Assembly (NCBI GenBank): GCA_973895155.1 | Contig: OZ316899.1 | Coordinates: 1,883,573-1,947,572 of the forward strand | DNA length: 64,000 nucleotides | Direction: 5' to 3' | DNA from: Marsupella aquatica | Taxonomy: Eukaryota > Plantae > Marchantiophyta | Part shown: positions 19,238 to 63,452 of the stretch, piece by piece | Layout of the letters: every line of letters starts with the position of its first letter | Position numbering within the stretch: the stretch's first letter is position 1 | Notes under the pieces: model-generated | The model's database searches: none | Told to the model about the DNA's origin: nothing | Seen by the model: only the letters and a program-made list of their open reading frames with translations | Made by a program: the position numbers and the translations under genes

Positions 19238-20334
19238 TTACTCTTCTGACTCTTCACTGTCCTCATCTCCAGATCCAAGGTCCACCACATTCTTCGACAC
19301 CTCATCATCTTTAGATTGCTGAGAAGCATTTCCACCCTCATTCTCGTCTTCCGAATCAAAATTTAGAATAGCACGGAGCCTGTCCTGCTTCTTACTTCCA
19401 GGAATCTTCTTAGGAGGAGTTGGTGCAACCACTTCTTTGTTCTGTAAAAGATCGAGGAAGACCTTACCGGAAGTATCAACAAACTCTGGCCGATTTTCCA
19501 GCCCAACAACAAAGCGACCAGAATAATCTCCAGCCACAAACGTACTACCGGAACCTACTGTCCAGTCCATAACGATATCTCCAGGAAGAGTCACCAATTC
19601 CAAAATAGTTTGCATGAAACCCACAGGCAATCGTGAATTTCCTGCAAATTGGAGCTCAGGAGTCGGGTCATGTCGCGGCAACAAAAACCCAATAATGTTA
19701 GTGACGGAAGGGTCTTCTTCATTCGATAGTGGCCGGAACTTGGGGTCTTTCGGGACCCTTCCCTTTGTCGAAATGCGGCAAAATATATTAAGAGTAAGTG
19801 TGAATATCTGCAACACAGTTTCCCAATGAAGGCAGTATAAGAAAACAGACACATATATTAGCGCTTGGCGCTAGTCAACCATTCATCCTTACAAAAGATA
19901 AGTGAATTGTAGATATTGCGAATGCTGATAGTAGCGTCGGGCGCTAGTATGTGCAAGAGGAATTGTTACCTGAGTATCAGATCGGGGCCTATACATTGGT
20001 GTAGTCATGACCACATGGTGGGTTGAAATACACTGGAAACACTTAGAATCCTGGCAAGCCGCAATCACTTCAGATACCTGATCATAGTCTCCTCTGTGTA
20101 AAATTGCAAGTAGGCCATCGTCTGCAAGGAACGGCTCCATGGCTCGGAAGAAAGAGCTGGGAATAGTGTAATCCTGAAGGTTCCACTTGGGAACCTTCCG
20201 ATCAAGAAGTGTTGGTTTTAATCCAGTGGGAATGTAGATGAAACCAGCATCCACACCAAAGCCCCTCTCTTTTTCGCCACGCATTACTCCCTTCTCTCTG
20301 TCTCCTGACTTTACCAATTCCTTTCCCCAGGCCT
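19238..20334 (-). pseudogene. C-terminal exons of the ParB-MTase fusion: beta-class N4-cytosine/N6-adenine DNA methyltransferase-like domain
   Basis: RLPVGFMQTILELVTLPGDIVMDWTVGSGSTFVAGDYSGRFVVGLENRPEF fits the N6_N4_Mtase motif X-I-II pattern (kP..l...l...t.pGD.VlDpf.GSGt......gR..iG.E). Upstream VDAGFIYIPTGL...FLADDGLLAIL sits where motifs IV and VI are expected. Intron 19969-19808 (GT..AG, phase 0) joins the exons in frame. Confidence 0.75.
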
Positions 20335-23300
20335 CACTAGTAGAAACCGGGGTAATTTAGACCATACCTTATAGGACTAAGCCCACTAAGTCCTTCTTCC
20401 ATACTTTAAATGACTCGCACCCATTGCCAAGGTTTTGTTAAAGACTATAAAAGACTTTGAGTGTTTTCCGGTTTAGTTAAAGACTATGAAAAGTAACCTT
20501 GCTACTTTGTGAAGGGTGAACACTCTAGGACATCATGGGTTTTGTTCTTGGAATCACTCTAAAGGTCCACACAAAGACTAGTATAATACAAAGTCTTACA
20601 AGGGTTCATGATAAGAGTATACTTAAGAAGGACCGGGCGACATCCTACTTTTGGGCCTAAGTGCTTAAGGACATGCCTTGTATATATGACCAACCTTAAC
20701 TAACATTGCACCGTAAATATCCATGTAACGGGTACTTTTCATAACTTAGGGTACAACTGTACTGGAGGGCTTAGGGTGGTTTCTAACCGGAACCGGAACT
20801 AATGCATCACTATAACCCTAGCTAGGTACAACTCCCACACCATGATATATTCCGCATTGCCAACTAGTGTCGTTTTAACAAGGTCATGGGCACTAATTGG
20901 CACAATGAACAGTCTAGCCCGTGATTGATTTGAGTCTAAATGATGGTGCCTTTTGATCCAAGATTAATTCCACAAGGGGGGGGGGGGAGGGTTAGGGTGG
21001 GGCCCACAACTAATTAAGTGGCCATGACTTTGTCACCAAAGGGATTTATTTAAAGTTATCCTTAACCCTCTAACTTTAGTTTTGTGTGTTGCCTAACACT
21101 CTGGCGCAAACGTACTTATTATGCTCAACGGGTCACCTCAACGGAAACGAGCTTACATGACTGCTTGCACTAAGTCTTGGGTTAGGGTGAGTGTGCTTTG
21201 GTCATCAGGTGATTATTGGGTTTTTGTGAAGGGAACTATTGAGTACCTGCGCCCATGTGTTCGGGCCCCATTGTGCGACAGAACGTTGTGCTTTGCTTCT
21301 GTGAGTGGAGCATACGAGCAAGGTTTAGGGTTAACATTTTGCGAGGGAAGCTGGGAGGCGATTGTAGTCAATTGTTGCCGTCCACTCCTGCGAGCGCTTT
21401 TGACAGTTCTACCTGCCCCTTACAATTGTTTGGACAAAGGAGTTCAGCAAGTGGTTTGCGCTGGTTTGGGACCTTGACAGTCGTGAGGTGGTAAGGACAT
21501 TGAGGCATCCCTGAGAAGCGCTTGATGGTAAGGACATTGAGGCGTTGCAGACATTGAGGCGTTGCGGACATTGCAGAGAGGCTCATGAGGCCAGTGACAG
21601 CTTTTGGCACGAAGGCAAGCGGAGATTTGTCTCCTGCCTGAGAGCTGACAGCTTTGGATTGAGACAACGTGGGCGCACCAAGATTCACAGAAGACTGACT
21701 AGTTGGGACCGACCGGTCTTGGGATGTTGCAGCCGTGGAGGGACCGGGAGCGCTAAGGTACATTGCAGCTACGAGCAGCAATGCACCTGCCATAGTGACA
21801 TTGAACTGCCCTGAATCACCCTGGTTAGTCCAAACTTCCATTTGCAGGTTAGTTTTGGTAGTGGCTTTGGTTTTCTAGGCGGAATGAGCTCCGATGCCAT
21901 GCATTAAGAATGTGGGAAATGCTATTTTGTAGCTTGCTACCTCATAGTGCTAATTTCAACTTCAGGTTTGTGTGGTTTTGGGCGATAAGCTTGTGGCTCA
22001 TTCGGACTGAGTGACCTTCCTGTGGGCCCTGCCCTAAGTGTTCACACTTCTCGCTGTCCCAAACTGCGAAAGGCTTCTCCCCGTTCTGTATCCCTGCTTC
22101 AGTAATTGTATTGAGGTCTTTCAATCAGTCTCATAGGGGAGGTCATTGTCTTCTCTGTAAGTTGTTGCTCCTATCGTACTACCAAGCTTGTTGAAGGGAG
22201 CTACCATCGCGAGCTGCTACCATTGCGAGCTACTACCATCGCGAGTTGTTGAGGAGAGGGCCAGTTGTTTGCGAAAGGATTTCCAGATTGTGTCGGAGGT
22301 CCAGATTTCTTGCCTGTGGGTCCCCATGTTTGCAGTTTTTTTCCCGGCTTCTTGCGCAGTGCTCCGACGTAGTACCCATGATGCTAGTCTGAACGGATTC
22401 ATGAGCTGTGACTGATTTGCTGTTCAAACGGTGTCTTCAGCTGGAGCTACAATTAGTGTCTGCGGAGCTGCCAACCAGGTGCAGGTGTGATTGAGGTCAG
22501 TTCAACTGTTGGGTTCCCGAATGTTCTGTTGCCATCATTTGTAACCACGAGCAATGGACTTCAGAGGCGGGATTTTCTAGGGATTTCTGCTAAACCCTTT
22601 GCTGGCTTTCTACTTTGAGGTCAACTTGCTGCTACCACAAGGTGGGGACTAGGGGCTGGACGCGGGAGCGAGTTCACAAGTGCAACATTGGCCTTCCACT
22701 TTCAGCCATATTTTTTGTAACAGAGCAGGCGGCGATTGCACCAAACCGTGTAGCTGGAGGTGCCCCTATCCAGCTGAAGGAGCGTCAAGCACTGTAAGGC
22801 AAGAGTTTCTCCTGCACTTGAACCGAAAACTTTCCCATGTCACCTTCAATCAGTTTTCCTCTGCACCTTGGCTTGATCAGCTGAAAAAACGTGTCACATT
22901 GAGCATGGAATCTATCGCCTTTCAGCCTTTGTGCTTTTCCGGACATCCTCATAGCAAGTTGGTCGCGCTACTAGAAGTACTACCACTTTTACTATACCTC
23001 CAATCTTAGTGCCTTTTACGGAATGCTTTCTCATTCTTCTACTTGACATGGCATCATCCTGATTGCTCGTCGTGCTATGACCAGCAATGGAAAGCGTAGA
23101 TGAGTCGCATTCAGATTCAGATTCTAATCCATACATTTTGTCTAAGGCTCTCACCACACCACGCCTGCCTGCCTAATTCTCCAGCCGATTGCATAGGGAG
23201 TAATCGCGAGTACAGCTCTCCAACAATTGCTCTTCTTTGTTGCTACTCTGGCTTTGCTGCTACATTGGTTGTTGATCTTCACCCACCCACTTGCCTACTC

Positions 23301-25768
23301 AATGCACAATGCACAGAGTACAGCTTTGTCTCTGCATCTGTTACTGCTCTCTTTGTCCCTCCCCTTGAAATTGTGGGCCTTAAAAGGTCAGTTGGCTTAT
23401 GTAGTTTTTATGTCCCTCCGCTATGTCAATGTGTGTTTCATTGCATGAGGGCATCAGTCGCCGTTTGCCTATAACCGGACTGTTCATTCTCTGTCCACTC
23501 ATTTGATGTAATTCTTCCCATTGCCGCCCAATGCTGTGATTTTGTGCTTTGTCTGGAATGCTATGGCGCCCATGCTACAATTTGTGGTTTTTGTCTAAGC
23601 ACAAATCCTCTTTGTGCCTGGTCTCTGTGTCCCATCATTTGGATTGATTGTGTAGACGTTTCCTCTTCTCCCAGTCCTTGTCATCCACCAGCCAAAGCAC
23701 ATTGGATTGTTTTCAAAGGAGGGATGTGTAGTTTGGAGGGTTTGATCTATGCAGCGGATTTGAGCAGATTGGCGGTTGTTAGTTTCTTCTTGTAAAACCT
23801 GTCTGTCTTTTCTGCTTTTGGCCATGCTCCTTCACTTCTTGCTGCAAGCTCAATGTGCTTCAGCTATGGCAATATTCACTTACCCTATCCCAACGGCATT
23901 GCCGTGAGCTGTAGGATAGCCAACAGAAGCAGATTGTATCGATTGCATGTAAGTCAGGGTATTTTATGTATTGCGGAACAACTGTCCAAGTATGCTACAA
24001 TGGTCGGTCTTGTGCAGCTGAATGAGCCAATTTCATTTTCCCTGTGCACTTCTATTTCTCAGAGAATTCCCTGGTCATGCTCATTTCCCCCAGAGTTACA
24101 AAACAAAGAAGAAGAGCTGACTAATTGTAATTCCAATCCATATCCTGATCGGTCAAGGATTGTTCACTACATTGGCCTTGTCATTGGCCGAGGTCACCAA
24201 ATTTTGCTTGGTTTCATTCCTGTGGAGCACTGCTGTGATGGATTTGTCGTAGCATTCTGCAAACTCTCACGGTTTGCTTATGGCCATTATTTGCAATTTG
24301 CTGCTACTAATATGTCTTCTTCTGAGCAGCATACACCAGAAGTAAGCAATAGTGGAGGTTTAACTGCACATCAACACATCTAGTGAACTACCTCTCTGCT
24401 GCTCACTGGAGGGTGAGACTTTCACTCTTTCTGGATATTGTAGTTTGTAAGCAAGTTGATTAGGAGTGTTTCATGCTATGTTTACACTGTGACCCCTAGC
24501 TGGAACCAATGGAATGACACAGTGAGTGGGAACTGATAATTTAAGGTTGGTTGCTGTTGGTGAGGCAAGTACAGCTCCTGCTCACCTTGCTGATCGAATG
24601 TGCTTATCAGAGGACGTGAACACACGACATCTCCACAAAAGCAACACTTATGGTGAGGACCCGCAACGCTGAACATGTGCGGCTTGCACGCAAGGCAGAG
24701 ATGTTGCGCCTTGAGTATGTCAGACTTGGGATCCTTCCAGCCCAGTCTGCATGGTACTTTGAGTACCCAGTTGTTGCCAGGAACAACTACAGCCGGCCTG
24801 TACCTGCTTCTCCACCCTTCCCAACATCCTTGGTATTTCTGTCTCTCGTACATGACCCGCCACAAATTAGGGCCCAAGGGTGTGTGCACAGTTGCCAATA
24901 TGACTGTCCTGCCTGTAGGGCTTCTGGCCTAGAGTTGGATGACCGTTCTCTTGGATGTCGGTTTTTTCACAGAGCACAATGTATCATCTGGAACCACTCG
25001 CCATCCTGCAGTGTGCCTGGCGATGTCACTTGTCCTGCCCTCCCAGACCCCACCACCGGTCACTTTGGTGTCTACACATGTTTGGATCACACGCTCTAGA
25101 GGACCACTTGTCACACCGCATGCACAAACCAGAGACCATTGACCTATAACTTAACACTTTGACTTGAACAGAGAGGATATTTACTTAAGATTTTGAATTA
25201 TGACCAATTTTGGGTCCAGGGTTTAGGGTCAACAGTACATAACTTATCCTATTATGGCTGCACTAAGTACAATATCCTAATTTAAGAGGCTAGCAAGCTC
25301 ACTTAAAAGTCTCCTTTCAAAGACTGGAATTAATGGGCCATGTGATAACCTGGAAAAAGTGATTTATGCCTAACTTATTTGTCTCATTCACTATCATAGC
25401 CTATTTAGGATGTATAAATTACAACCCTGATCACACTGCTTGATACCAATCCTGTTCAAAAAATGCCTGTTTTACATGTCACGACTGTTATATGTGATTC
25501 AAATGCATTAAATCTTGTTGCAGATCTCCTTTGGTGAATCATAGCCACAAAATTGAGGTGTAGGTGGAGCTATTGTACGAGGGGATCAGTTTTTAGTGTG
25601 GGCTCAACAAACCAAAAAGTATGTCTACTCTGCACATGTGTGTGAACATTTCATTGCAGTAGCAATTGCCACTCTAGTCTATATGCTACACTGTACTTTT
25701 TGTACACTGCACTAAATTGTATTGTCTGTGCACTCTGCTAAATTGTACTATCTGTCTCATGCGTAGGC

Positions 25769-26449
25769 ATGGCACGCCCTAAAATCCGAGCCAAGAAGCG
25801 GGGGACAGAGGTGAGCAACACAGGTGTAGTTGGGCCAGATGGTAGTAACTTCTCCGCAAGTCAGATTTTCCAGAAGGCAGCTCATTGTTGTGCCATTTGT
25901 GATGATGGTGGTGGCTTAGCCATATGTGAGGGCCCTTGCATGAGGCATTTCCACCTCAACCCGGAGTCTGACCTTACTGCAGAAAACAACTGTCCAGGGG
26001 TGGGCCTCCCGTCAGCACACCAGGGAGGCTGGATGTGCACTGATTGTTTGGAGAAGCAGGCTAAGTGTGCACAGTGTGGGAAGTTGGGGTCTTATGAGGG
26101 CTCTGTTGATGCTCCACCACTTGTTAGGAAATGCCCTGACAGATATTGTGTGAGGTTCTTTTGTTTTTCATGTTTGCCCGATCTTGCCACAGCTTGCCCA
26201 CTTCATAAGTGCAAGGCATGTGGTCAGCACGATGAAGATTTCTGGGTGGACATAGTCCACTGTGTTAGGTGTCCCACCATGTGGCACTTTCATTGTTTGA
26301 AGGAGTGTCAAGCAGAAGGCTATGCTTGTGACAGACACATCTATGATCACTCTGCACATGGTGTTGATCGATGGATCTTCTATTGTCATCGCCATGCCAT
26401 AGATCCTACTTTGCACACTCCCATGAGAGATCACATTTCTTGGCTTTGA
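25769..26449 (+). CDS. EDM2/NSD-type composite PHD finger protein (CACTA cargo)
   Basis: CAICDDGGGLAICEGPCMRHFH...CTDC, CAQCGKLGS...CPDRYC...CPLHKCKAC...HCVRCPTMWHFHC...FYCHRHAIDPTLHTPMRDHI. The Cys/His spacing and the C-terminal TP.RDH motif resemble the PHD region of plant EDM2. Confidence 0.75.
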   Translation: MARPKIRAKKRGTEVSNTGVVGPDGSNFSASQIFQKAAHCCAICDDGGGLAICEGPCMRHFHLNPESDLTAENNCPGVGLPSAHQGGWMCTDCLEKQAKCAQCGKLGSYEGSVDAPPLVRKCPDRYCVRFFCFSCLPDLATACPLHKCKACGQHDEDFWVDIVHCVRCPTMWHFHCLKECQAEGYACDRHIYDHSAHGVDRWIFYCHRHAIDPTLHTPMRDHISWL

Positions 26450-27032
26450 ACCTGAATAATGTACATGCATAGTGCACCTGATGTGGATACCTTGGAGATT
26501 GCAGACATTCCAATTTTGAGAAGAAGGACCTCTGTAGGAGAGGATGCTTAGGCAACAAGTACCCTAAGTTCATTACTTGTTCCTGGGTACATGCCTTCAA
26601 AAACTCCCCTTAAGCCTTCTAGGAACTTTTTAAACTCTGCAATCATTTTGATCACGACTTACATGACACTGCTTAAATTAAATCAGGACTTCTCATTATG
26701 AGCATATAAGTTACAAGGCTATTTAATTTGCGAGAATTCCCTTAAAGTGTACCAACATTTTGTATTCTCATTGAATGTCTGCCCATTTACAACATCTGTA
26801 TGTGGCATCACAAAACAATTGCACTTGTCACCTTCAATATTGTGAAGGCACATATTCAAACTATGAGGTGCATGCTTGCAGGTGTCTAGTACGTTTGTCC
26901 CAATATTTCTCCCGTTTGGAATCGGAGCAGAGACTCACCAGACGACTGGACTGGACCAAGTTATAAACGCAGCATTTTAAGGGCCCTCCGATTATCAGGT
27001 GAACGCATTATCTTCCGGTCTGCAGTGATTAG

Positions 27033-27896
27033 GTGGCCCGTGTGTACATGGCATCTAGGAAACGTACAAAGGTTGACCACCCGCCTCTGTTGGCTGGAAT
27101 CAAAGCCATTTTGATTCCTGGCCACTATGGGTTCACCCAAGTGAGTTGGCCAATCGTACAAAAACGATTCTCAGAGTTCCATGGGACTGAAGTCAAGGAC
27201 ATCACTCCACAGACTACACATGTTGTTGCGGGGACATGGCTGGATGTGATGAACAAGTGGTCATGGTCCTTCATTGATTCTGCCATTACCAACCAAGGTC
27301 TAAAAGTAGTTGAAGTCTCTTGGCTGACCGATTCTGTTAAACATAGGTGTGTACAGAGTACTGAGCAATATGAGTTGTGGGAGAGTGAGGAGGCCACTGC
27401 AGAGGCTTTGGCTGAAAAGGAAGCCTATGAAGCAGCGGCAGAGAAACCCAACTTTGCTTCTGTCCAATATGGACCTGTTGTCAACATAGGACACCATCCT
27501 ATGCGTGCAGATGCTATATTGAATGAGCATGGCAAGGAGAGAAATACCATTATGAAGGGGTTCAGTGTGGTATTTGCAGAAGAAGGAATTGGGGAGACTA
27601 AGTGCAGACTGTACAAGTCCATAGTTGTTGAGCTAGGTGGGACAGTGGAGGAGAGTCTAACAGAAACCTCCACTCATGTTGTAGGTCTGTCATACATGAA
27701 AATATGCAGAAAATTCTTTAAGACAATAGTGCGTGATTTTGTCATGAACAACAATCTTTGGGTGCTTTCCCCTAATTGGCTTCTGGAATCAGCAGCTAGA
27801 GGGAAGCGACAGAATGCTTGGGACTTTGATATTTTTGAGGCCTGGCCCTCCAAGATTCAGCGGAGATGTATGCTTAGCAAAGGTGGGAGAGAGTGA
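27033..27896 (+). CDS. Tandem BRCT domain protein (CACTA cargo)
   Basis: Two units with BRCT hallmarks: LLAGIKAIL...TTHVVA...VVEVSWLTDSV and MKGFSVVF...ELGGTV...STHVVG...VLSPNWLLESA. Confidence 0.8.
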   Translation: MARVYMASRKRTKVDHPPLLAGIKAILIPGHYGFTQVSWPIVQKRFSEFHGTEVKDITPQTTHVVAGTWLDVMNKWSWSFIDSAITNQGLKVVEVSWLTDSVKHRCVQSTEQYELWESEEATAEALAEKEAYEAAAEKPNFASVQYGPVVNIGHHPMRADAILNEHGKERNTIMKGFSVVFAEEGIGETKCRLYKSIVVELGGTVEESLTETSTHVVGLSYMKICRKFFKTIVRDFVMNNNLWVLSPNWLLESAARGKRQNAWDFDIFEAWPSKIQRRCMLSKGGRE

Positions 27897-28036
27897 GGAG
27901 TAGGAGTCCCTCATATTTTTGTATAAATCACAATTTTGTAATAAATGTGATCCTTGAACTAACTCATCTTGTCATGGTTGGTCGCAGTTGAAGTGATTGT
28001 TGTTTCCTGCTGCGTGGGGTGTGACTGTGAATCTAC

Positions 28037-28606
28037 TTGCTGGGCTCTGTTTGGCTGAAGACTTTGGTGGGTATGCTGCCTCTTCCAGACCGTCAGGCCC
28101 TATGTAGGGTCCTCCTACAGGTTGCATCGTGCATGGCTACTGCTTGGGCTTACTTGTGTGGATTGGTAACCAGACAGAGTGTAGCTCCATCCGAGATAAT
28201 GCCTGCAGACCTTGGATGTGTTGTGAATGCTGTGGTGAATGAGGATGCACAGTCGGAAGAGGACATTTACTTTTCAGCAGATGAGTTAGACAAGCACGAT
28301 GCTGTAGGTGGTTCCTTGTTGCCTGATTTGGCAGATGATATAGTTCTTACACATGTTTGGCCGAGGGTTCTTGTGGTGTCTGGCGCACAAGATATCTGCA
28401 AATATAGACTAATTAGTACCCAGTGGAGGGACTTGGTAGCAACATGTGCACCATGGAGGGCACTGTTGCCACTGCTTGTAGGCACGGATCGAAGACCACC
28501 ATGGCATGAGCAGGGTTTAGACCTTGATGACTTAATGTACATGCCTGAGTACCTCAGGGCTGAGTGGCATCGACAACAGGATTGGTATCCGTATTTGATG
28601 TGGTAG
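28037..28606 (+). CDS. F-box-like protein (CACTA cargo)
   Basis: LLPDLADDIVLTHVWPRV...YRLISTQWRDLV fits the F-box pattern. The real start is probably downstream of the called TTG start. Confidence 0.55.
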   Translation: MLGSVWLKTLVGMLPLPDRQALCRVLLQVASCMATAWAYLCGLVTRQSVAPSEIMPADLGCVVNAVVNEDAQSEEDIYFSADELDKHDAVGGSLLPDLADDIVLTHVWPRVLVVSGAQDICKYRLISTQWRDLVATCAPWRALLPLLVGTDRRPPWHEQGLDLDDLMYMPEYLRAEWHRQQDWYPYLMW

Positions 28607-28932
28607 TAAGATGAGGACATCTCACACCGGTCTCGCACCTGGCACCTGTGTCTATGACTATACATGATTGGACTCTGATATGGTCATGGATGTACGTGCA
28701 GAGGCAGTACATGTGAGGACAGCGGAGGAGTTGACACCCTCAAACATTTAGGAATTTTGTCTCATTCACTTGAGAATAGGTACATGACTCAGGCACCTAT
28801 ATTTTTTGTTTTTTTGTTTTTTTGGAACGTTACGTATTTTGGCAAGTACAGTCGGGGGTGAAATCCTTAACAGGAAGTGTATTTTTCACTTGCATAATAA
28901 AATGATAGGGTGCTGAGTGCGTGTGTATAGTG

Positions 28933-32630: not shown

Positions 32631-32807
32631 GCAACAGCTGGCGATTGGCAAGTATGAGGTTGAGAATGACTACCTGCACAGAGTCACAGAACGGGAATTG
32701 TTGCCTGGAATGATGTTTAGGATAGTTGGATATGCATGAAATTGATTGATACTTTGAATTTAGTGTGCTGATTCTCCCTGTTTGGTTGTGGGTGCTGTGC
32801 AGAAGCT

Positions 32808-35800: not shown

Positions 35801-36016
35801 GTATGTGTGGGTACAGGCATTTTGCGACCGGATCATGCTAAATTCCATGGCAAAGTGGTCCCGGATGACCATGTAGTAGTGTTGTTGACTACAGTGATTG
35901 TATCTGATTGTAATTTGCCATTTCCGAATAGAGACGATGATCCACCTCAGGAAATAATGGCAGATGCAGTAGGATCTCTTGTGCTCTGGCCATCAGAGTG
36001 TGTTAGTCTGCAGTGA
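32808..36016 (+). CDS. Multi-exon CACTA ORF2 (TnpA-like; Transposase_24-like and TNP1/Transposase_23-like segments)
   Basis: 33688-34158 has W...FMSEAGQSKSELMSNARGKVKHLSQAGRGSYA. 35423-36016 has VGTGILRP..KFHGKVVPDDHVVV...LPFP...AVGSLVLWP. GT-AG flanked exons and RGG-type 18-bp repeats near 33555-33630. The exon structure is not fully resolved. Confidence 0.7.
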
Positions 36017-36836: not shown

Positions 36837-36882
36837 AATAGTTGTTTTATGGGGTCTAAATACCCCCCGGTTTCTACTAGTG

Positions 36883-49457: not shown

Positions 49458-49473
49458 GGGCACGGCGCCGTTT

Positions 49474-49484
49474 GAGGAGAGGGC
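49474..49484 (+). promoter_or_regulatory. Polypurine tract
   Basis: GAGGAGAGGGC immediately 5' of the 3' LTR start (49487). Confidence 0.8.
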
Positions 49485-50773: not shown

Positions 50774-51380
50774 TGTCGTGCGCATACATATCGCTACACA
50801 ACATACATCGCTTGTCACATACATCCAGACATAGTCACACTGCCACATCACAAATACAAGAGAATGGAATACAAGTGGAACTCATGTCCACACATGTCCA
50901 AAACCCACAATAATCTTCATACAATCGGCACAACGATCTCGGTCAACAATACCCCATCGATCCCGCACCGATCCGATCACACACGTATGTCAAGCCAACG
51001 CACCTTGCACTACTCAAGGAATCCACGTTACACAAGCGGAGCTCACAGCCACCATAGCCACACTCAAGCTCCTCTCTCTCCAAGGCTCAACATTGAAAGA
51101 TGACCTTTCAATGCCTCACAAGTGAGAAGTACCCTCTCACACAAACCTGACAGAACCTTATCGGCTCCAATAGCACTCATACCAAACGTACATACTCTAA
51201 TAGCACGATATACTACTACACTACTCAGAATGGTGTGACAGCTGTCGTGCGCATACATATCGCTACACAACATACATCGCTTGTCACATACATCCAGACA
51301 TAGTCACACTGCCACATCACAAATACAAGAGAATGGAATACAAGTGGAACTCATGTCCACACATGTCCAAAACCCACAAT
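50774..51380. repeat. Terminal repeat block X-Y-gc-X: X = 138 bp (50774-50911 and 51243-51380), Y = 329 bp (50912-51240, second copy 60037-60365)
   Basis: The X copies look identical and the Y copies differ at two positions seen. The Y/X junction is the palindrome GACAGCTGTC. A PPT-like AGGGGGGCG (minus strand) lies at 51381-51389. Confidence 0.9.
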
Positions 51381-51553
51381 CGCCCCCCTAGCTGGGAGTA
51401 AGGTCCCCTAACTCTAGCTAGCCATGAGTTCTACAAGGTTGATATACACCTTTTTAGGTGTGAAGATCAGGAGGCCGGGTGCAAGTGAGCCCCATCGATC
51501 ACCTACCTGCAATCCATATCTGCCAAGAGAACACAAATGATAACTAGTCGGCT

Positions 51554-54500
51554 TCACCGACACTGAGGACACAACCATGATCCACTAGGAATCACCTGCA
51601 ATGGTGGTGTCAAACATGACATGTGCCATCCTCTAGAACACTTATCACAAATCAACATAGTAGCTGCTCCCTGAGCAGATCCACACAACATACATTTCAA
51701 GCCAGCACGAACATGTGCCAAGCTTGGATCTACTGTACCATCAATGTTGGGAAGGTGACATGGTGCACAGTTGCGCACATGATCCTTCCAAACCATACCA
51801 TCGCGTCCCTCCAACATCAGGACACCAGAAGGCAACACTTCACGCACACGTAAGATTGTCCGGCCTGCGGTCACATCAAGTGTCGTGGGTGCTGTCTGCT
51901 GCAAATAAACATAATCACCAGGATGAAATCGTCGAATGCTTGCACAGTAACCTCCTCCACGAATAGTGGCATACCTCAAAGTATCACGATGTTGGGCAAT
52001 GGCAAGGTTGTCAAAAGCCATGGGCATCACTCTCTGAAATACCCGTGCTCTCTCTGAACACACCTTGACCCAAACATCAGGATCATCCAAGTTCACAACT
52101 GGTGCAGCATGACGACGAATAGCTGCTGGCAAATCTGGCTCTCTACCATAGAGCAAAAAGTAGGGTGAGAAGGATGCAAGTGATGCTTGCCGACTGAAAC
52201 GGTAGCCCATAGCTAACCAAGGTAGCTGGAGATCCCAATCTCCCAGATGACCAACCTGCAAGCCATACTTACGCAATCCTCTCTTCATAGTTTGCACAAC
52301 TCTCTCAGCTAATCCATCTGCCTCAGGATGATCACGAGAGGTAGTGCGATGATCAATCAGAGCTTGTTCACACAAACTCTCAAACTCTCCACGGAACTCA
52401 GTTCCTTGATCAGTCAACACCTCAGCTGGTGCTCCAAAATGACTGAGTACACGATCCAAAAATGTAGCAGCAACTCCTCCACTGGCTTTATCTAGCAACG
52501 CCACTAGCTCAATCCACTTGGAGAAGTGCTCCACCATGACCAAAACATACCGATTATGACGTTGGGTAAGAGGTAATGGACCAGCAAAATCCAAACTCCA
52601 ACGATATCCCAAACCCATGATCGGTAACGGGTGCAACTGGGAAGTGGGAGCATTAAATGATGCTCTCACTCTGTCACATACCACACACTTAGCTATCAAC
52701 TGCTGGACATGAGTGTGCATACCACGCCACCAATACTGCGTCTGCAACAAGCTGTAAGTGTGCTTCACACCAAAGTGACCCAACTCCTCGTGCGCATGTC
52801 GCACCAAATGTACTCGTTGTGATGGTTTTGGTACCACCAACATCCTACCATCATGCAGTACTCTCAAAAGATGGTTTCCCTCCCATCGAAACCTCTTGGC
52901 TCTCTGTAGAACCCTGTCACGTTCCTTGGCATCAACACTGCCAACAATAGAACTATTGCGCAGATATTCCAACACTCTCACATCATTGTGAATATCTTGT
53001 TGTCCAGAAGTTACCTCACCAACATCCACATCTGAAGACTCATCACCCACTCCATCCAATGAAGTAGAGTCCACAGATCCACTGTATGTTGGCACCCAAC
53101 AAAGAAAGGCAGATGCATGCCATCCTGGCACCATCTCCTTATCTGACTCATCATGCCATCTGGCTCCAGTCTCATCCTGCTGACTGGTACATGGATTGCG
53201 GCTTAATCCATCTGCATCCAAGTTCACTTTTCCAGGCCTATGCACCACCTGGAAATCATACTCCTGTAACAACAATGCCCATCGTGCAAGCTTCCCTGTA
53301 AGCTTATCAGACTCCATTAACCACTTAAGAGGCTGATGATCAGTGATCAAGGTGAAGGGGTTACCAAACAAGTAGCAACGAAAGTGTGCAACAGCCCACA
53401 CTGCTGCCAAACACTCTCCCTCATAAGAGCTATACTTAGCCTCTGCTGAATTGTTTGATCTACTGGCATAAGCCACAACAAACTCATTCCCCTCATCATC
53501 CTTCTGAGTCAGCACTGCTCCAAGTCCTACTCCACTCCAATCAGTGTGTAGCTGAAATGGTCTGCCTGAAATGGGTCTTCTCAAAATAGGGGATGATGCC
53601 AACCTTTGCTTCAACTCCTGAAAGGCATGCTCCTGGTCATCACCCCAAATCCATTCCTGACCCAACTTAGTGAGTATGGTCAAAGGTTTAGCAAGCTGGC
53701 TAAATCCTTTAACATACCTCCTGTAGTAGCTCGCCAATCCCAAGAATGCACGAACTCTACTCACATCAGTAGGACAAGGAATCTGTGTAATGGCCTCCAC
53801 TTTAGTCTGCTGTACACCCAATCCCCCTGGGTATATGGTGTGGCCCAAATACTCAATCTGGTCTTGGAAGAACTTACACTTGCTAGGATGGAGCTTCAAC
53901 CCATGTGCTCTCAATCTCTCCAACACAGTCTGCAAGTGCTGCTGATGTTCTTCCACAGTAGAAGAATAGACCAAAATATCATCAATATAACATCTGACAA
54001 AATCCAAACCTGCAAGGATTCGATCCATGACTCTCTGGAACTCAGCTGGTGCATTCTTCAACCCAAATGGTAAGAATAACCATTGATACAAACGATCTTT
54101 GCCATAAGAATCAATCCCCCAGAATGCTGTCTTGGACCTGTCAGCATGCCTAATTGGAAGCTGATGGTATCCTGCCCTCAGATCCAATGAACTGAAAACC
54201 TTTGCATGCCCCACAGCATCAAAGATCTCCTCAGGTGTGGGCATGGCATATCGATCAGATTTTGTCTGGCGATTAATAGGTCTGTAATCACCACACATGC
54301 GCCTATCTGTGTAATTGCCATGCACATCCTTCTTGGCTGGCATCACTGTGGCAGATGCATACTCCCCATATGAAATCTCCACCAATCCAGCCTCCAACAA
54401 ATCTTGAGTTCTACTTTGAATCAGAGCTCTCTCCATGTCACTATAACGGTATGGCCTACGAAAGATTGGCGCATCACTAGCCAATTCAATCTGAATACCA

Positions 54501-57500
54501 GGGCCCTTCAATGTCCCCAAATCCTTCATGCTGAATGCAAAACAATTCCAATAACTCTTCAGGAATCGATGCATGCGACGTCTCTCCTCCCCTGTTAACT
54601 TAGGGCCAAGCTGTGGTTCCCAATTCTCCACCAAATCCCTAATATCTCTTTGTAGGGTAGAAGAGATAGCCGATGATTGCTATTTAGCAGTAGATTGAGC
54701 AGTCCCTTCCTGCTCAACAATCTGTCCAGCCGCCAATCCTGTCATAGGTCCATGGACTGTCTGCTCGCCCCCAGCTGTGGTCAATACTGTCTTAGTGGAC
54801 CGCAAGCTCACCAAGGGACAATCAGTAATTCCGGCAGAGCGCATCCGCAACTGTTCAGCTACTCCCAAGCTGATAATCCAAGTCAAACAATTCAAATCCA
54901 TTGCTTGACCAAGAACCTGGCGCCGCAAACCCTCTGACACAGAGGCAACTGCAGTGGTGCCAGTAAAAAATCCCATAGCACGCTCTCTCTCATCAGCAGT
55001 AGGCTCCACTAACTGCTGGAGAGCTGTGTCCCATACAAGTCCAGGGCCACCTGCTCTGAATGCATATGAAGTAGAGTGGCTTACAAGAGTGGGTAATGCA
55101 CAACGTGGGCACCCAACTGCATTGACCATTGCCAATGGAGGTCTATCAGGTTGGGTCACACCCTGTGCACGACGCCCTGGATCCAAAATATCATCCACCA
55201 CTAAGGCTGGTGAGCGTGGAATGCTGTCAAATGCGCGCTTCAGCACCTCACATGGGATCAAATTAGTCTACCATAAGCGTGGACGATGTGCACGAGAACC
55301 CACATGTGCAGCATCCAATAACACAGCAGGTCCAATCCAAGACCTCACCTGGTGAACACTGGCAACAATCCGACTACGATCATCACCTAACAATGGCACA
55401 TTCTCCAAAATGTATGCTGGAGACTGTGTCTGATGTAGCTGGAGGTGACGCAGCACCCGTAACATCTCCCAAAACAATGCAGAGCGTGGATCATGAAGTC
55501 CATGCCCAATGCCAGCTCTAGATTGGCCCTGACATGGCCAACCAGCAATCACCAAATCAATGGGGCCAACACGATGTAGATGATCCGCCCCCAACAATGA
55601 AATATCAGCAGGTAGTGCATGCTGATAACCACGAACAGCATCCACTGGCAGCAACTATGGATATCTATCCACCAACATAGCCACATGTCGCAATGAGACC
55701 CTCCGTGTTGTCTCATCTGTCTCCACATACAAATAACGACGCACAGGAATTCCTGCCTGAAGAACAGCAGCCAATCCAGTGCTAATCCCACCAAAAAGAT
55801 CCAACAAACAAATACCCTCCGGTGGATACTGCCAAGCAATAGGAGTGGTATCCAATGGTGAAAGAGTCACAGGTCCATCTGCAAGAGACTGCTCTGCTCC
55901 TGACTGTGGTGTAAAAGCATGACGCCATGCATCATGTACCAATCGTGCTGCTGCCTGTGGCAAGGCTTGTGCAGTGCCCCACACTGGTGGCACAACACTG
56001 CCAACAGGTAATCCTCGCATGATGTGCTCCTCATGAGACTCCTCCAATGGTGGAACATCGGCTGCATGCGCATTACCCTCAATCAAATCATCAGGTCCAG
56101 CAATTACACCACTGAATGCTGCCAAAGACAATGGTGTGGATTTAGGGCCTCCCATAGGTCCACTAAATCTCACTGGCAATTTGCTCAATCGAGCATCTCC
56201 TGACTGCCAATCAGGTCTATATGACACTGATTCCTCCCAAAAATCAAGAATAAATCCCATGGGGTAGAGCACTGTACATCCCACCAACACATCATATGAC
56301 TCTGCCTTAGTCAGAATAGCCCGCGCCTGTATCTGTGAGCTATCTGTGGTATGACCTTCCTGAATCCTCAAATCAAGTGGTCTCCTGGTGATATGCTGTG
56401 TAGGTGTAGGTCCCCCCAATGAAGTCTGAATGGGAAAGGGACAATCCTCCAAATCCTCTGGACGCAATCCCAATCCACGTATGGCAGACTTCCCCAACAT
56501 CAAGGGCTGAGCACCAGTATCCAGTAACACTCTCTCTGGCTGGTATACTGCTCCAGAAGGCCCAAATAATCGGAAGATACCACTCCGATTATCCAATGAC
56601 ACAACACTAGGTTTAAACCTAGTCCTCTCAAATGCAGGGCGTGCTGGTAAATCCACCAACCTCACTGCTGCTGCATGCCATGTCTCACTAGTAGCAGTAG
56701 GTGGCATGGTCTTCACTACATCAACACTGCAAGTTGCTTCTGCATGGGAAGCAACCACTGGAGTGTCCTCACAGAGTGTAGCTGCCAATCTGAACACTTC
56801 TGCAGGACCAACTCCCAAGTTCAGCATGTCTGTCACTGAAAATAATGGGGTGCGTACTATGGCAATAGCCGCCCCCAGCAAGGTACCTGTCATCCCTGCT
56901 GCATCACTACCTAATTTTGCCAACTTACCCACATCAGGGTTTGTCCGAACCGGGTTCATAGAGGCAGTCTGAATTGTCTCTGACAATGTAAAAGACTGAG
57001 GAAGCTTTGTCTGCCGACGTGCATCCCCCCTTTGTGGATCTAACTCCACTACTGCTCCTCGGGGCTCAAGAGCTTTGGCTGCCCCACGTATCAAAGCTGC
57101 TGATGCATCAATATGTGCAGTGCCACACATGAATCCCATGGTGGCAAGGTCTCCATCAGCTCCATAAGATGTGGAAGGACCATGGGATGTGGAAGGTCCA
57201 TAGGATGTAGATGCCCCATCACCAGAATTAGGTCTCACCTGGGAACTAGCCATGGCAGCTAGTTGTTGCTCCAATTGAGCAATCTTAGCATCCTTTGGAT
57301 CTATGGTTACAGCAGGGGCAGCGTCACCTCCCTGTCTCCTTGCATGTGGCATGCCACGACCACGTCCACCACCTCTACCTCCTCCTCCTCTTCCCTGATC
57401 ATGTGTACGGGATCCTCCTCTTCGTAACTCAGGGTGGAGTGAGAAACACCTATCCTTGGTGTGTCCAGGAGCTCCACAGTGATCACACTGTCGCTGATCA

Positions 57501-58669
57501 GGCGCTGATGCTCCCCCTGATCCTCTATGATCTGGACAATATCTCTGTGCATGATCCCCACCACAGGTCCAACATCCTGACTGCTGTCCAGCATAAGAGG
57601 GCACAGGTCTCTGGCTGGTAGACTCTCGTGCAGTAGGCTTCTCCCTCTGGCTCTTCCGTGCAGTAGGCTGTGGTGTGGATGTAGATGCAGCCTTTGGTGC
57701 TTCCTTGGCAAATCCGAAAGTCACCACCTTCTCATTCACCATATTGAGCTCAATGCGCTCAGAAAGGGTGAAAACAACTGCTAATGTGGGATCTGCATCC
57801 CTAAGCAGAGTGACATCTCTCACTCTGCGTCGCAATTCTCTGTCCAGAATTGCATACCAAAACTGGACTGCCTGAGCCTCTGTCACTCCCTTGGTGACAG
57901 TGATCAATCTGCGCATACGTGTGTATGCCTCACGTAGGCTCTCTCCAGTCTTGCGTTGGAACTCCTGAAGACCCTTCAACTTATCAGTTCTCACACCCTG
58001 AAAGTTCTGCTTCAGTACCTCAAAGAATTCCACCACAGGATTAAATGCTGGCGCAACTCCAGTTCCTGTCACAATCACACCGGCAGGAGTAGTGGTGGAT
58101 GCTGCTGGAGTGCTGCTGGTGGATGGTGTGCCACTCTGGCTAGTGCTGCTAGAAGAAGCAGCAGCTGTGGCAATTGGTTGGGCAGCCGCACTAGTGCCAT
58201 AGGTGATGGACACATAATTAGGCGACCAATGCTGCCTCCATGCCTCAATCTCAACCAAATGAGCCTTCCGAAACTCATGGTAGTCATCCATGGGTGGCCC
58301 CTCCAAATGCTGGAATAATCCCTTCCATGCCATGAAAGGGGTAAACAACGTGACATTACGCAATGTCTGCATATCACACCACGTATCAAACTCCTGGATG
58401 AAGTCATCCAGATCAATTGTGCCAACTGCACCAGAGTATCGTCGTGGGCCCTTTGTAGCCCCGTACATCTCGTCCATATCCCACAACAAAGGTGCAACCA
58501 CCTGATGATGAGGAGAACTGGTCACTGAGTCCTCATCAGAATCACTGTCTGAAGCTGCACTGCTGATTGCTACCAATGCCGCTGGCCGAAACTGTGCCCC
58601 ACTCCGAGTGAAACCGGTCCGTCGTCCATCGGGTAATCCAGCAGCACCAGAAGAATCCGTGGTGACCAA
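51554..58669 (-). pseudogene. Gag-PR-DNMT-RT-RNaseH-integrase-PHD polyprotein (2371 codons, three in-frame TAG stops)
   Basis: ORFs 55655-58669, 55268-55654, 54680-55261 and 51554-54634 are all in the same frame. Knuckles CWTCGGDHAQRYC and CDHCGAPGHTKDRC, protease LLDTGAQ, RT YIDDIL, RH HTDWSG/EGECLA/TDHQPL, integrase HAHEELGH..CVVC/SLDFAG/LTDQG/AERVVQ, GPY/F FHPGDYV, and PHD CMLC...CDKCSRGWHMSC...WLCPQC. Confidence 0.93.
54860..55825 (-). other. C5-cytosine DNA methyltransferase domain within the polyprotein
   Basis: Motif I LDLFGGISTG, II YVETD, IV GWPCQGQSRAG (catalytic PC), VI ILENV, VIII AHRPRLW, IX ERERAMGF and X VLGQAMD, in canonical order. Confidence 0.93.
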
Positions 58670-59204
58670 CCCTAACCTAATCTATGTGCTAACCCTAAGG
58701 GCAATCTATCCCTGTCAGCACCACAAGCACTCACCATGGTGTGTTGGGCATCACTCCAACATCACCAAGAGAGAAATACACAACACACTAGAGTGTCCAG
58801 TTGCAAACCCGGATCACTCCTATGGAATCAAGCACCCACACGAAACTAACATGGCGCATAAACAGGAAACATGTGTGAAGAGGATCTAGAAACAAGAATG
58901 GATACCATTCAACTCTCCACACAAAAGCAAATGCAAATCAATATGACAATGTGCATAAGGTTCAAGGAAGAGCCTTCATAATAGGCTTCACAATGGCACT
59001 CCAATATTGTAGATGAGAACCAAGGCAAAATTGGTTCAATCTGTGAGTCTAGATGGACTCATAAGTATCAAAAACCCTCTAACAGCCTCTGATTTGGCCT
59101 AGAATAGGCCTCTAAACAAACCGGGAAGTGTATAAAGCCCCCTGGCGCTTGAATCTAAACAACAAGTTGTCAAAGCTTGTGTGTACACAAGGTGGGATGA
59201 GAAC

Positions 59205-59440
59205 TTGCCAGTTAAGCGCTCGCGGTTGGGAATAGCCCCAGGATGGGTGACCTCCTCGCGCTCGACCTTGTGCCTCCCCTCGCGCTCACGGCCCGGAATA
59301 GCCCCGGGATGGGTGACCTCGACCTCGCGCCTGCCTGCGCTCGTGATGGGTGACTTCGCGCTCGCGGTTGGGAGCACTTTCGGGATGGGTGACCTCACGC
59401 GTTGCCTCGCGCGAGCACTTTCGGGATGGGTGACCTCGTG
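59205..59440. repeat. CG-rich degenerate repeats with core GATGGGTGACYTC (5 copies) in the 5' leader of the DNMT-Gypsy
   Basis: Cores near 59242, 59308, 59344, 59385 and 59425, embedded in CGCGCTCGCG-rich sequence. Confidence 0.8.
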
Positions 59441-59671
59441 CACCTCACACCTGACCCCAAAAATGACTACTTCCTTCACGAAAAGCTCCCGAAAACTGTC
59501 GATTTCCTTCATGAAAAATGCAGCCCTTCCACAGAACTGGCAGCAGCTTGATTCAACACCTTTGACCCTCGTTTCTTTCACTGAAACGATGATACCGTCG
59601 CACGGGGCATTGGCAGCTCCGTTCCTTCAGGAAAAGAGCCGTCGCTTCACCTGTGCCTTGCCAACATCGTC

Positions 59672-59763
59672 CAACAATAGCCGGCAATCAGATCTGAAGC
59701 CCCACAGTAGCCGACAATCAGATCTGAAGCCTCACAGTAGCCGGCAATCGGATCTGAAGTCTC
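59672..59763. repeat. 30-bp tandem repeat, three copies
   Basis: CACAGTAGCCGRCAATCRGATCTGAAGYCY repeated three times. Confidence 0.9.
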
Positions 59764-62700
59764 ACGGATTGACTTCCACTGTCCAACATCTACTCAACAT
59801 TCGCTTTCCTCCACAAATCATCAATCGACCTCCAACTCAAAACCTGTCACCAATCACAGATCTGTACATCGATCGGGAAGCAGGCCGATCGGACAACAAC
59901 GATACAGGTCAAGATACCAATGATCTGTTCGATAACAACACACGATCCGAGCTACCACGAACCATCGACAACTCAATCAATCGAACTTCTGTCCGCACAG
60001 TCCGTACAACAGATTTCGAATGTGATCTTTCAATGTAATCTCCATACAATCGGCACAACGATCTCGGTCAACAATACCCCATCGATCCCGCACCGATCCG
60101 ATCACACACGTATGTCAAGCCAACGCACCTTGCACTACTCAAGGAATCCACGTTACACAAGCGGAGCTCACAGCCACCATAGCCACACTCAAGCTCCTCT
60201 CTCTCCAAGGCTCAACATTGAAAGATGACCTTTCAATGCCTCACAAGTGAGAAGTACCCTCTCACACAAACCTGATAGAACCTTATCGGCTCCAATAGCA
60301 CTCATACCAAACGTACATACTCTAATAGCACGATATACTACTACACTACTCAGAATGGTGTGACACAAGAGTTAATATGAGAGATCAACCTGGAGCTGGA
60401 AAAGACAGAGATTCTCCTGAGCAATCAGCCGACGTTGCTGAACTGGCTCTTGCAACTGTCAACCTAAGGACCAACTCCTCCACTCCTTCGAAGGCAGAGT
60501 CGAATCAGCAGCTTATTGATAAGTTGACATCTCTCCTCAGTTGCAGTAATGATGGACTATATGACGCTGTTAATAATTTGAGAATGGAGGCTGTTAGTTT
60601 GAGATCACCATTTCATGATCAGCTAAGTCCTGTCAGAATGACCTCTCCCCCAAGAGAACCAGCACCAATGGAGTTTGTGATCTGTACTCCTGTCACTGTA
60701 CACCCCCTCCCCTAGAAACAAGTGAGCCTATTCCAGTAACAGATAGTATCAGCTGTGTGGCCATTGTGGATGACTTGTTAGAACTACTACAGTGTGAACC
60801 TCGACAGATAGCATCTGTGGTCCGCAACTTGATCCAACAATGTCCAACTGCTAGTCCTACTCCTAGCCCAGGTTCGCAACCTTACAGCCCTGATTCCAAC
60901 TACAAACCCACAGAAGGACCCACCTACAATCGGTCACAATATGAGCACCCTTTTGACAGAAAAGATCTACCTGAAGACTCTGATCCACCCTCAGATGGTG
61001 AAACTTATAGATCTTATGATAATTCTCTTGAGTCATCCCCAAGGCAGGGATTTGAAGATGTTGATACTGCCTTAAGATCCAATCCAGACTTAGTAGCAGT
61101 TGTCACTTCATCTACTCAAACACCTCGGAATGCTACTATCGAAAGCAGGTACCCTAGACGTCCTGAGTCAGAAGTACACAGGTATGCCACCACTTGCAAA
61201 ATAATGCAGGCCAACAGACCACCGGTTGGAGAGTTCTGGAGATACTACTATCTAAAGAAGACTGAGGCAAGCTACATCTTTGATCTTAGGTGTCTTGGTA
61301 CTTCTAGAGTGGAAATGGCACAATTTGATGAGTTCTGGATTGACTCAATATACTTTCGGCCTATTCTTGCTATGATGCTACTCCAAGGTGATGTAGAGGT
61401 AGAGGATTCAGACTTAGTTCTGGCATACTTTGGAAACTTTGCAGCCTATGCCTTGGATTTTGTGGTTTCCTTCCTGATGCAGAGCAAGAAGTCTACTACT
61501 CTACAACACGATTACATACCACAAGGACCTAAGGTTACCCTTGTTTCAACCAGTACATTGGCTGAGAAACAGAGGATCTGGAATAATGTCACTTCTCAGA
61601 CTCTAGCTGAATTCAACCGATATTTCAGAGATGTCAGATGGAGACTTCGACCCTTCTATTCCAGGATGATGAGTAGTGATGAGTTCCTGTACCATTATTC
61701 CCAAGTATATGCTGCTACCTGCAACAACTATGATGTGATCAGGATGTACAGAGAAGCCCTTCGTATTGATTCATGTTATTTGATGAAGAGGATGCCTTTG
61801 ATGTATCCTGAGAGACAACTGAGATGCCTACCATACTCCAGAGGATCCCCACGCCAAGCTGAACTGATGGAGGTTACTCAGAACCGAGTTGTTACCCTTG
61901 TGGAGTTGCTGGAACCAGACGACATCCGACAGCAAGCTTGAAGAAGTCTTTAAGTGTTTTTAGTTAGTTTTTAGAGTAGTGCATCTTATCTGATTTTTAG
62001 AAATGCATTCTAGAGCTTTGGAAGCTGTCATACTTCTTTAGTGTATAGTCTGTACCTAGGAAAACCACCCGGCAAAATCTCAGAGTTTTCTGACTTATAG
62101 TTAGGAAGTTAAAAATAGTTGAATTCATCAAGTCTTTACTTTACCGCGATTACGAGTTACGACTTAGCTTTTACTAGTTACTAGTTTCCGATTACGAGTT
62201 CCGATAGACAGCCGATTACGAGTTAATAGTTACTAGTTACGAGTTCATACTTAGCCATTTTTCCGGCTTTTCACTTACTGAATCGCCATTTTAAAATTTT
62301 GAGGGGTATGAAGAGGCATGTCTCTTCGACCCTGTGACCTCTTACTCTGTAGATTTTTACTATAAGACCCCTCCACCACTAGTGTAGATTATGGTAAAGT
62401 TAAGCAATTTTTGCCTTTCCTTGGTGTTCTGCCAGTTGATCATGAATGTTAAGAGTTCGAGATCAAGCTTGACACCAGGAGAAGACTTTCCTCCTTCTTG
62501 TGGTTTAATCCTTTGAATAAATCATGGGAAGTAAAATTCCAGTTGTGTAAATCTTATGAGATCTGATGACAGATTCCTCTTTGGTGACTCATTACAATCT
62601 CCTGGGTTCTTCGAGTTAACTCACTGAGTTTAAGTCTTATTTGAAATTGATGGATTTTCTTTCATGTTATTTAGTACCATCTAAATGTTGAAGTAGCTAC

Positions 62701-63160
62701 CTTTTAGATCTTATCTGAGTACCACTTAGAAAGAAAGGATAAGACATGTTGACGGCATTTTAAAAGGTACTCTAGTAAGCAATTTAGATCTGAAAAGCAA
62801 TATGGATTTGTATCCTTAAGTCTTTTCATTTTGACTTATGTCTAAGGAGTAACCTTGGTCTATTCCAGACTCCCTTAGCATACTTTGAGGTATTTTCCTT
62901 GTGTTTTGTTAATCATTCCCTTTTCATTAATTTATTGTTACATGATGCTGAGTTGTCATTAAAAACCACTCACCGCTGTGGAGCGATCTTCAAAATACCT
63001 TAGTAAAGTAATCAATCCTGATTACTATGTGTTAAAGAGAGTTCTTAAACTCTCATTTGTGTTTTTATGTATCAAATCAACCCCATCTTGTTCTTTACGG
63101 GAACGAATACCGAGTTTGAAGACCTATAAATGTGTTTTTAGTTCTTCATAGCAAACTACA

Positions 63161-63452
63161 ATCTACAAAGAGGAATTCGAGGTGGCTCCTTATCGAATCC
63201 TCAAAAATCCTTCCCGAACGACAATGCGTGCTTTGATATTACCTCGTCTATCGATAAGCCTATGTCACTGACTTCACCCATGGAGACGTCCTTAGGGTCC
63301 ATTCTCCCTCTCCTCGACCTCGGGAAGGGCTGTGCAGATTCAGCTTCGGAAGTCGATAGGGACGCAATCGATCGAGTGACGTGACGGGTGTATACTGAAC
63401 CAGCAAACAAAGATTGAGAGGACTCAGAATGACCACCATCAGCCTCCCCCAT
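63161..63452 (-). pseudogene. N-terminal part of the ParB-like exon, separated from 39263 by the Gypsy insertion
   Basis: Joining across TSD ATCTA gives ...SFGKDF*GFDKEPPRIPLCR|LLPMEVVQTL in frame. The single TGA is compatible with CGA>TGA. Confidence 0.75.

Follow-up and report, generated by a model that had tools for sequence, protein, structure and literature searches.

A dead, spliced gene with a methyltransferase-derived domain, probably an accessory gene of Mutator-like transposons in liverwort-type genomes

Transposons that carry DNA-modification genes are rare, among them retroelements that carry C5-methylases and DNA transposons of fungi that carry TET/JBP genes. Our searches of the literature on ParB, methyltransferases, and Mutator, Marchantia, and eukaryotic transposons found no description, on eukaryotic DNA transposons, of a gene like the one reported here, which lies in a 64,000-nucleotide (nt) stretch of contig OZ316899.1 of the liverwort Marsupella aquatica (the window, meaning the whole stretch at its full length). 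The DNA of the window is plant-like and transposon-dense, and the gene codes for a domain with the motif DGNHR and a C-terminal domain derived from an amino-methyltransferase (the methylase-like domain). On balance, we favor a reading in which a Mutator-like transposon family of liverwort-type genomes has this as its accessory (second) gene, here in a dead copy, and the protein would be a non-catalytic DNA-reading module.

The closest described proteins are the fusions of a ParB domain with a beta-class N6/N4 methyltransferase, and the ParB-linked methylases, of bacteria, plasmids, and phages (Iyer et al., PMC4738411; polyvalent proteins, PMC5512222). The family of the window gene is like these in its ParB-like N-terminus, PF01555-type C-terminus, beta-class motif order, and carriage on mobile elements, but it has spliceosomal introns, a conserved insert of ~450 amino acids (aa) between the two domains, no DPPY loop, and a eukaryotic Mutator-like carrier, and its own ParB label is putative. 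As in ParB-parS systems, many ~16-bp dyad-symmetric sites lie on DNA encoding a (probable) ParB-like protein, and the site is lineage-specific; unlike those systems, neither a CTP-binding GERRxR box nor a ParA partner was found in the family, the host is eukaryotic, the sites are in transposon introns and flanks, and a helix-turn-helix (HTH) and binding are putative here.

Also comparable are the recruited eukaryotic N4-cytosine methyltransferases, among them MpDN4MT1a/b of Marchantia, a sperm-expressed host gene whose product is catalytically active and contains TSPPY (bioRxiv 10.1101/2021.02.12.428880). The present family shares with it the liverwort lineage and a prokaryote-derived beta-class amino-methyltransferase domain, but lacks SPPY and DPPY, exists in many copies, and is carried by a transposon. 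The DIRS1 retrotransposon polyprotein contains an inactive methyltransferase domain with a proposed binding role (Iyer et al., PMC4738411), also a transposon-encoded amino-methyltransferase domain with substituted catalytic residues, although DIRS1 is a retroelement, its domain is from another methylase group (PCIF1-like), and it has neither a ParB-like partner nor a palindrome set. In organization, the element recalls MuDR (mudrA plus mudrB) and other two-gene Mutator-like elements in combining a Mutator-superfamily transposase with an element-specific accessory gene, but that gene is methylase-derived and unrelated to mudrB, and the transposase is too diverged for Pfam.

Reconstruction of the gene

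The gene is organized in six minus-strand coding segments from 63452 to 19238 (positions are those of the window), interrupted by two large insertions and three short introns, as follows.

63166-63452, minus strand: exon 1 part a, N-terminal low-complexity region with the ATG at 63452 and a premature TGA at 63201-63203, ending within PPRIPLCRL
39264-63160, plus strand: Ty3/Gypsy insertion, 23.9 kb, nested, in the first exon; 5' long terminal repeat (LTR) at 39264-41361
38838-39263, minus strand: exon 1 part b, DGNHR domain, probably ParB/Srx-like; DGNHR at 38972-38986
38711-38837, minus strand: intron 1, GT-AG; palindrome at 38735-38749
37377-38710, minus strand: exon 2, conserved ~450-aa middle region without a known domain; premature TAG at 38680-38682
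37243-37376, minus strand: intron 2, GT-AG; palindrome at 37284-37298
36886-37242, minus strand: exon 3 part a, low-complexity linker, interrupted by the CACTA insertion
20335-36882, plus strand: CACTA insertion, 16.5 kb, in coding sequence; perfect 18-nt terminal inverted repeats (TIRs), CACTAGTAGAAACCGGGG
19970-20334, minus strand: exon 3 part b, N-terminal half of the methyltransferase-derived domain; IPTG at 20222-20233 in the place of DPPY
19808-19969, minus strand: intron 3, GT-AG; palindromes at 19859-19873 and 19932-19946
19238-19807, minus strand: exon 4, C-terminal half of the methyltransferase-derived domain (motifs X, I, and II), acidic tail, and TAA at 19238-19240

An earlier note on this DNA had proposed that excision of the Gypsy and CACTA elements, followed by splicing of three GT-AG introns, restores one reading frame, and this proves exact. 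With the two insertions and the three introns removed and one copy of each target site duplication (TSD) retained, the joins 63452-63166, 39263-38838, 38710-37377, 37242-36886, 20334-19970, and 19807-19238 give a spliced gene of 3339 nt, or 1112 codons plus TAA, in a single frame. The TSDs are ATCTA for the Gypsy (39259-39263 and 63161-63165) and CCT for the CACTA (20332-20334 and 36883-36885), and all three introns are GT...AG. Both of the premature stops that had been reported are present, a TGA at 63203-63201 (aa 84) and a TAG at 38682-38680 (aa 248), and the alternative frames of the spliced sequence contain 31 and 75 stops. A chance open reading frame (ORF) was considered and is ruled out by the frame statistics together with the homologues.

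These homologues are numerous: 104 proteins match the 410-aa middle exon in a full-library HMMER search, mostly as exon-sized fragments. The named relatives are from the liverworts Riccia sorocarpa (assembly GCA_046195345.1, PMC11923412) and Calypogeia fissa, and the others are from metagenome and Logan assemblies; among the loci discussed below, L001, L002, L006, and L007 are from Riccia, L008 is from Calypogeia fissa, and L009 is a metagenome contig (ENA ERZ22866046, 7196 bp). The reconstructed protein, with X at the stops, has colinear tblastn matches to all of its parts in L008 and L009, and these matches break at aa 238 and aa 923. The breaks coincide exactly with window introns 1 and 3, and the Riccia gene models have splice sites there too. 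The middle region is joined to the methylase-like domain in Riccia models P0028, P0086, P0109, P0111, and P0117, and the first-exon ORF of L009 agrees in length with the N-terminal region of the window gene. The PPRIPLCRL motif, which the Gypsy has broken in the window, is intact in the relatives, the acidic C-terminal tail is common to them, and the position of the window TAG at aa 248 is a Trp in the relatives, with a Trp codon in all other copies read in the public runs of two organisms.

From the frame and these relatives, we conclude that the window gene is one spliced unit coding for an N-terminal low-complexity region, the DGNHR domain, the ~450-aa region, and a methyltransferase-derived C-terminus; a single gene with this domain order had been proposed, as had its eukaryotised character, with which the conservation of its introns agrees. 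The motifs that had been quoted are both found, DGNHR at 38986-38972 and GDIVMDWTVGSGS at 19582-19544 (exon 4, minus strand). The window copy is dead and cannot work, as it has two premature stops, a 16.5-kb CACTA element in its coding sequence, and a 23.9-kb nested Gypsy element in its first exon. One contig of run X2 skips 132 nt (38544-38677, with AT..AG ends), which is a deletion variant among copies and not a splice.

The methyltransferase-derived and DGNHR domains

The last exon matches PF01555 with 33.3 bits (scored on 19238-19852), above the Pfam gathering score of 26.7, and 11 of 17 family members are above the same cut-off. A profile of the family matches CcrM (6pbd) with an E value of 2.3e-5 over 185 columns, covering CcrM residues 57-259 from just past motif IV, and its next matches are DpnA, RsrI, N4-cytosine methyltransferases, MboIIA, and PvuII, all of which are beta-class; hhalign against a plasmid beta-class methylase gives a probability of 96% across motifs X, I, and II. 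The match to CcrM and a manual alignment place the motif IV region N-terminal to motif I, as is the beta-class order. Judged by these profiles, the C-terminus is a real beta-class N6/N4 amino-methyltransferase-derived domain (PF01555, CcrM-like by profile), as had been supposed. Its glycine-rich S-adenosylmethionine (SAM) loop (FxGxG, motif I) is retained, as GDIVMDWTVGSGS in the window and GDIVIDFAGGWG in Riccia.

The catalytic loop is a different matter. The residues at the place of DPPY, after a hydrophobic strand, are IPTG in the window (20233-20222), L[PS][ST]G in Riccia, LPNS in L008, and FPHN in L009; [DNST]PP[YFWH] occurs in 0 of 125 family proteins anywhere in the sequence, and the SPPY of DN4MT1/N4CMT-type enzymes is absent from every family member checked. 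Between Riccia copies, the two methylase-like exons have ratios of nonsynonymous to synonymous substitution rates (dN/dS) of 0.15-0.24, and the DGNHR and middle exons have ratios of 0.21-0.25, from which all parts of the gene, including the methylase-derived domain, are read to be under purifying selection in Riccia. Because the catalytic loop is lost family-wide, yet the domain is under purifying selection, the best reading is that it is a conserved pseudo-enzyme, which is more likely than a writer of N4-methylcytosine (4mC) or N6-methyladenine (6mA). The earlier note had offered "writer or DNA-binding derivative"; the writer is not supported, motif IV being absent from the window copy and every relative examined, and a DNA-binding derivative fits better. 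A tblastn search of phages and plasmids with the methylase domain returned standalone small beta-class methylases only, through motif I, and no ParB fusions.

The middle region of ~450 aa has no relative outside the family in Pfam, PDB, or the ESM Atlas. In the DGNHR domain, the DGNHR motif is invariant in nine of nine aligned members, and its likeness to a ParB or DndB motif is a resemblance only. The best hidden Markov model match of the domain is weak and is to the DndB-type DGQHR family TIGR03187 (E value of 0.076), PHROG ParB-like partition families match weakly as well (E values of 0.059 and 0.19 only), and tblastn against phages gives noise only (E value of 0.6). A low-confidence ESM Atlas model of residues 95-300 of protein P0056 has template modeling (TM) scores of 0.51-0.57 to ParB_N and HTH_ParB clusters, with ParB_N in 8 of 10 rows. 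These hints are weak but agree with each other, and the domain is fairly likely to be ParB/Srx-like.

Language-model features of the same P0056 segment (95-300) rank the fungal DUF3723 first (0.95) and ParB_N lower, and DUF3723 is unmatched in Pfam scans of DGNHR-domain pieces even at an E value of 10. DUF3723 genes are cargo of fungal Starship elements, and the ranking may point to transposon accessory genes of a wider class.

The carrier element, its palindromes, and neighboring insertions

Hundreds of short contigs with 90-100% identity to the gene are present in the public runs of two organisms, and such numbers of variant contigs are the signature of a multi-copy repeat family. Near the gene in the window is a transposase gene, and further features of the element are as follows.

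2433-7369, minus strand: transposase gene, downstream of the methylase-like gene, in ORF pieces 2433-2756, 3264-4094, 4204-4800, 5200-6126, and 6139-7085
Starts at 2936, 3151, 4845, 4914, 4990, 7292, and 7355: palindromes of the transposase region, in the gaps between ORFs and the upstream flank
18635-18649 and 18699-18713: palindromes in the 3' flank of the methylase-like gene
63914-63928: palindrome in the 5' flank of the methylase-like gene

The transposase pieces contain a DDE-like core and, in ORF 3264-4094, a SWIM-like CxC...CxH zinc motif; their language-model features score PF10551 MULE at 0.93, and all ten best matches are to PF10551 MULE. Homologues of the transposase are neighbors of the DGNHR gene in L001, L002, L006, and L007 of Riccia and in L008 of Calypogeia, and no locus with enough flanking DNA lacks a homologous Mutator-like transposase beside the gene. 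The proposal that the gene is transposon-borne is thus upheld by adjacent transposase homologues in five further loci and hundreds of variant copies; the possibility raised along with it, that the homologues are single-copy host genes unlinked to a transposase, was looked at, and they are multi-copy and transposase-linked. DUF659 genes with a faint zf-BED match, of the hAT-like-transposase type, lie just past the element in L009 (6035-6946) and L007 (18219-19414), and their presence in two unrelated loci may be coincidence or an insertion preference.

A scan for exact even-length palindromes of at least 10 nt found nothing, and the signal emerged once a central spacer was allowed. The window palindrome, TAGCGCCNGGCGCTA, has 14 matches with up to 2 mismatches (0.5 expected), and a decay-tolerant pattern of it has 13 (0.2 expected). 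Seven of the 14 are in the transposase gaps and upstream flank, two in the 3' flank of the methylase-like gene, two in intron 3, and one each in intron 2, intron 1, and the 5' flank of the gene. They are therefore confined to the introns, inter-ORF gaps, and flanks of the two genes of the element, and the inserted CACTA and Gypsy DNA (40 kb) has none. This placement links the methylase-like gene and the transposase as parts of one element and is independent evidence that the three introns are noncoding.

The relatives have palindromes of their own. Riccia L002 has 29 copies of CAGCGA-N3-TCGCTG (0.02 expected), and L001, L006, and L007 have two types, a central intergenic one, CGGCGA-N3-TCGCCG, and one nearer the ends, CAGCGG-N3-CCGCTG, with 10 and 12 copies in L001 (0.02-0.03 expected). 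Calypogeia L008 has 20 copies of TAGCGAGCTCGCTA (0 expected), and L009 has 20 of CTAACGA-N2-TCGTTAG (0 expected). The half-sites are alike (YARCGN) but differ in sequence and spacing between lineages. In each element lineage, a palindrome of its own, 14-16 bp long and containing CpG, is repeated through the introns, the intergenic DNA, and the flanks. The copy in L009 is well preserved: 19 of its palindromes are perfect, and the N-terminal and methylase-like matches inspected are free of stops. It may be a young or active element. In L007, CCAGCGG-N3-CCGCTGG lies near both element ends and CCGGCGA-N3-TCGCCGG between the two genes (206-764, 5501-6530, 14749-15567), which hints at two DNA-binding specificities.

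The elements inserted in and around the gene have features of their own. ORFs of the CACTA element match the tnp2 transposase PF02992 (9e-58), DUF4218, and DUF4216 in Pfam, and alongside the tnp2 transposase, ORF 27033-27896 codes for a BRCT domain (PF00533, 5.6e-13). The LTRs of the Gypsy element are 99.1-99.75% identical, and its 3' LTR is in two parts, 49484-50387 and 61962-63160. The 11.6 kb between them (50388-61961) are a nested insertion containing a second Gypsy, in minus-strand orientation. This inner Gypsy (51554-54634 and 55655-58669) has a pol ORF with a PHD finger C-terminal to the integrase (PF00628, 1e-10), and the adjoining 1004-aa ORF is without a Pfam match at an E value of 0.001. 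The transposase region is flanked by inverted blocks of ~2.3 kb that are 91-93% alike (1-2363 versus 7597-9770 plus 14430-14596), the right one being interrupted by a 4.66-kb insertion (9773-14429) with an open 1219-codon ORF (9849-13508). Part of ORF 9849-13508 is 27% identical to a 381-aa ORF encoded by the blocks, which contain none of the element palindromes and look like separate insertions of LTR type. Just past the 3' flank palindromes, at 18435-18530, is a short array of 7-nt repeats of the AAACAGC type.

Competing readings of the gene and its palindromes

In the reading that we favor, the protein would descend from a bacterial or phage ParB-methyltransferase fusion and would be a non-catalytic DNA-reading module, a dimer of which would recognize the palindromes of its own element as ParB recognizes parS. 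Reading of the palindromes would let the element identify, organize, or gather its own DNA, the outcome being either assembly of the transposition complex or protection of its chromatin, with shielding from silencing. The more specific proposal of ParB-parS-like self-recognition in liverwort Mutator-like transposons, in which a lineage palindrome is paired with a co-evolving reader that is ParB-like and a dead SAM-binding methyltransferase, is a tentative one.

Some observations count against this reading. For the DGNHR domain, which the earlier note had called ParB-like, the label agrees with the weak convergent hints above, but there is no significant match in Pfam (including PF02195), NCBIfam, PADLOC, or a PDB profile search, hhalign of its profile against a plasmid ParB gives a probability of 0.14%, and AlphaFold2 models of it (9-row alignment) and of the methylase-like domain (17 rows) have a mean pLDDT (predicted local distance difference test) of 39; the ParB identity is plausible and not established. 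For the carrier, the transposase ORFs have no Pfam match even at an E value of 10, and the two genes are in tandem in the window and divergent in Riccia and Calypogeia, where the transposase is on the other strand, upstream of the gene. Searches for TIRs of the element turned up only the palindromes, with no TIR pair in the window, L001, L002, or L007, and no 9-11-bp TSD was found; the element ends are probably outside the window and loci or beneath other insertions. None of the public-run contigs matched to the gene contains an intron joint, and no listed run is recorded as RNA. A non-canonical catalytic mechanism is possible for the methylase-derived domain, and the link between protein and palindromes is one that we infer; the transposase could be the binder instead.

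That last option is the main alternative, if a doubtful one. In it, the Mutator-like transposase would bind the palindromes and the accessory protein would have another function: it might occupy CpG sites or titrate host methylation factors (anti-silencing), act as a SAM sensor, or anchor the element to chromatin. Subterminal transposase-binding repeats are usual in DNA transposons, the SWIM-like CxC...CxH motif in ORF 3264-4094 would suit such a role, and the arrangement in L007, with one palindrome type at both ends and a second in the center, is consistent with two binders. However, the sites lie throughout every intron and are not limited to the ends, and many-copy, dyad-symmetric sites of 14-16 bp are the hallmark of ParB-parS-type systems. 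That the gene codes for an active transposon-borne 4mC/6mA writer, marking element DNA at the palindromes, for example, is very unlikely, even with the motif I region so well retained in the window (GDIVMDWTVGSGS) and Riccia (GDIVIDFAGGWG), the domain under purifying selection, and CpG and GCGC-like palindrome cores as possible targets. The aromatic residue of motif IV in amino-methyltransferases stacks on the flipped base, and it is missing in every member; the catalytic tetrapeptide is absent family-wide, and its replacement varies (IPTG, LPSG, LPNS, FPHN) as would be expected of a loop freed from catalytic constraint. The existence of a functional liverwort N4-cytosine methyltransferase, MpDN4MT1, also favors a writer, but that enzyme contains TSPPY (bioRxiv 10.1101/2021.02.12.428880). 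Least probable by far is an ordinary single-copy host gene that was struck by transposons and is unrelated to the neighboring transposase, to which its introns and eukaryotic structure might point; against this are the hundreds of variant contigs in public runs, the homologous transposase adjacent in five further loci from two liverwort classes, and the palindrome shared with the transposase gene, and copy number and transposase linkage rule it out.

For annotation, the locus is a lesson that conserved genes may hide beneath tens of kilobases of nested insertions. For the biology of the family, a cut-and-paste element that appears to keep a methylase-derived pseudo-enzyme under purifying selection, along with a private palindrome in every intron, points to a means for an element to recognize its own DNA, and it bears on the entry of prokaryotic amino-methyltransferases into liverwort genomes, where 4mC is functional. 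If true, ParB-parS-like self-recognition would be the first of its kind among eukaryotic transposons, and the family would possibly be a source pool for the recruitment of the liverwort N4-cytosine methyltransferases.

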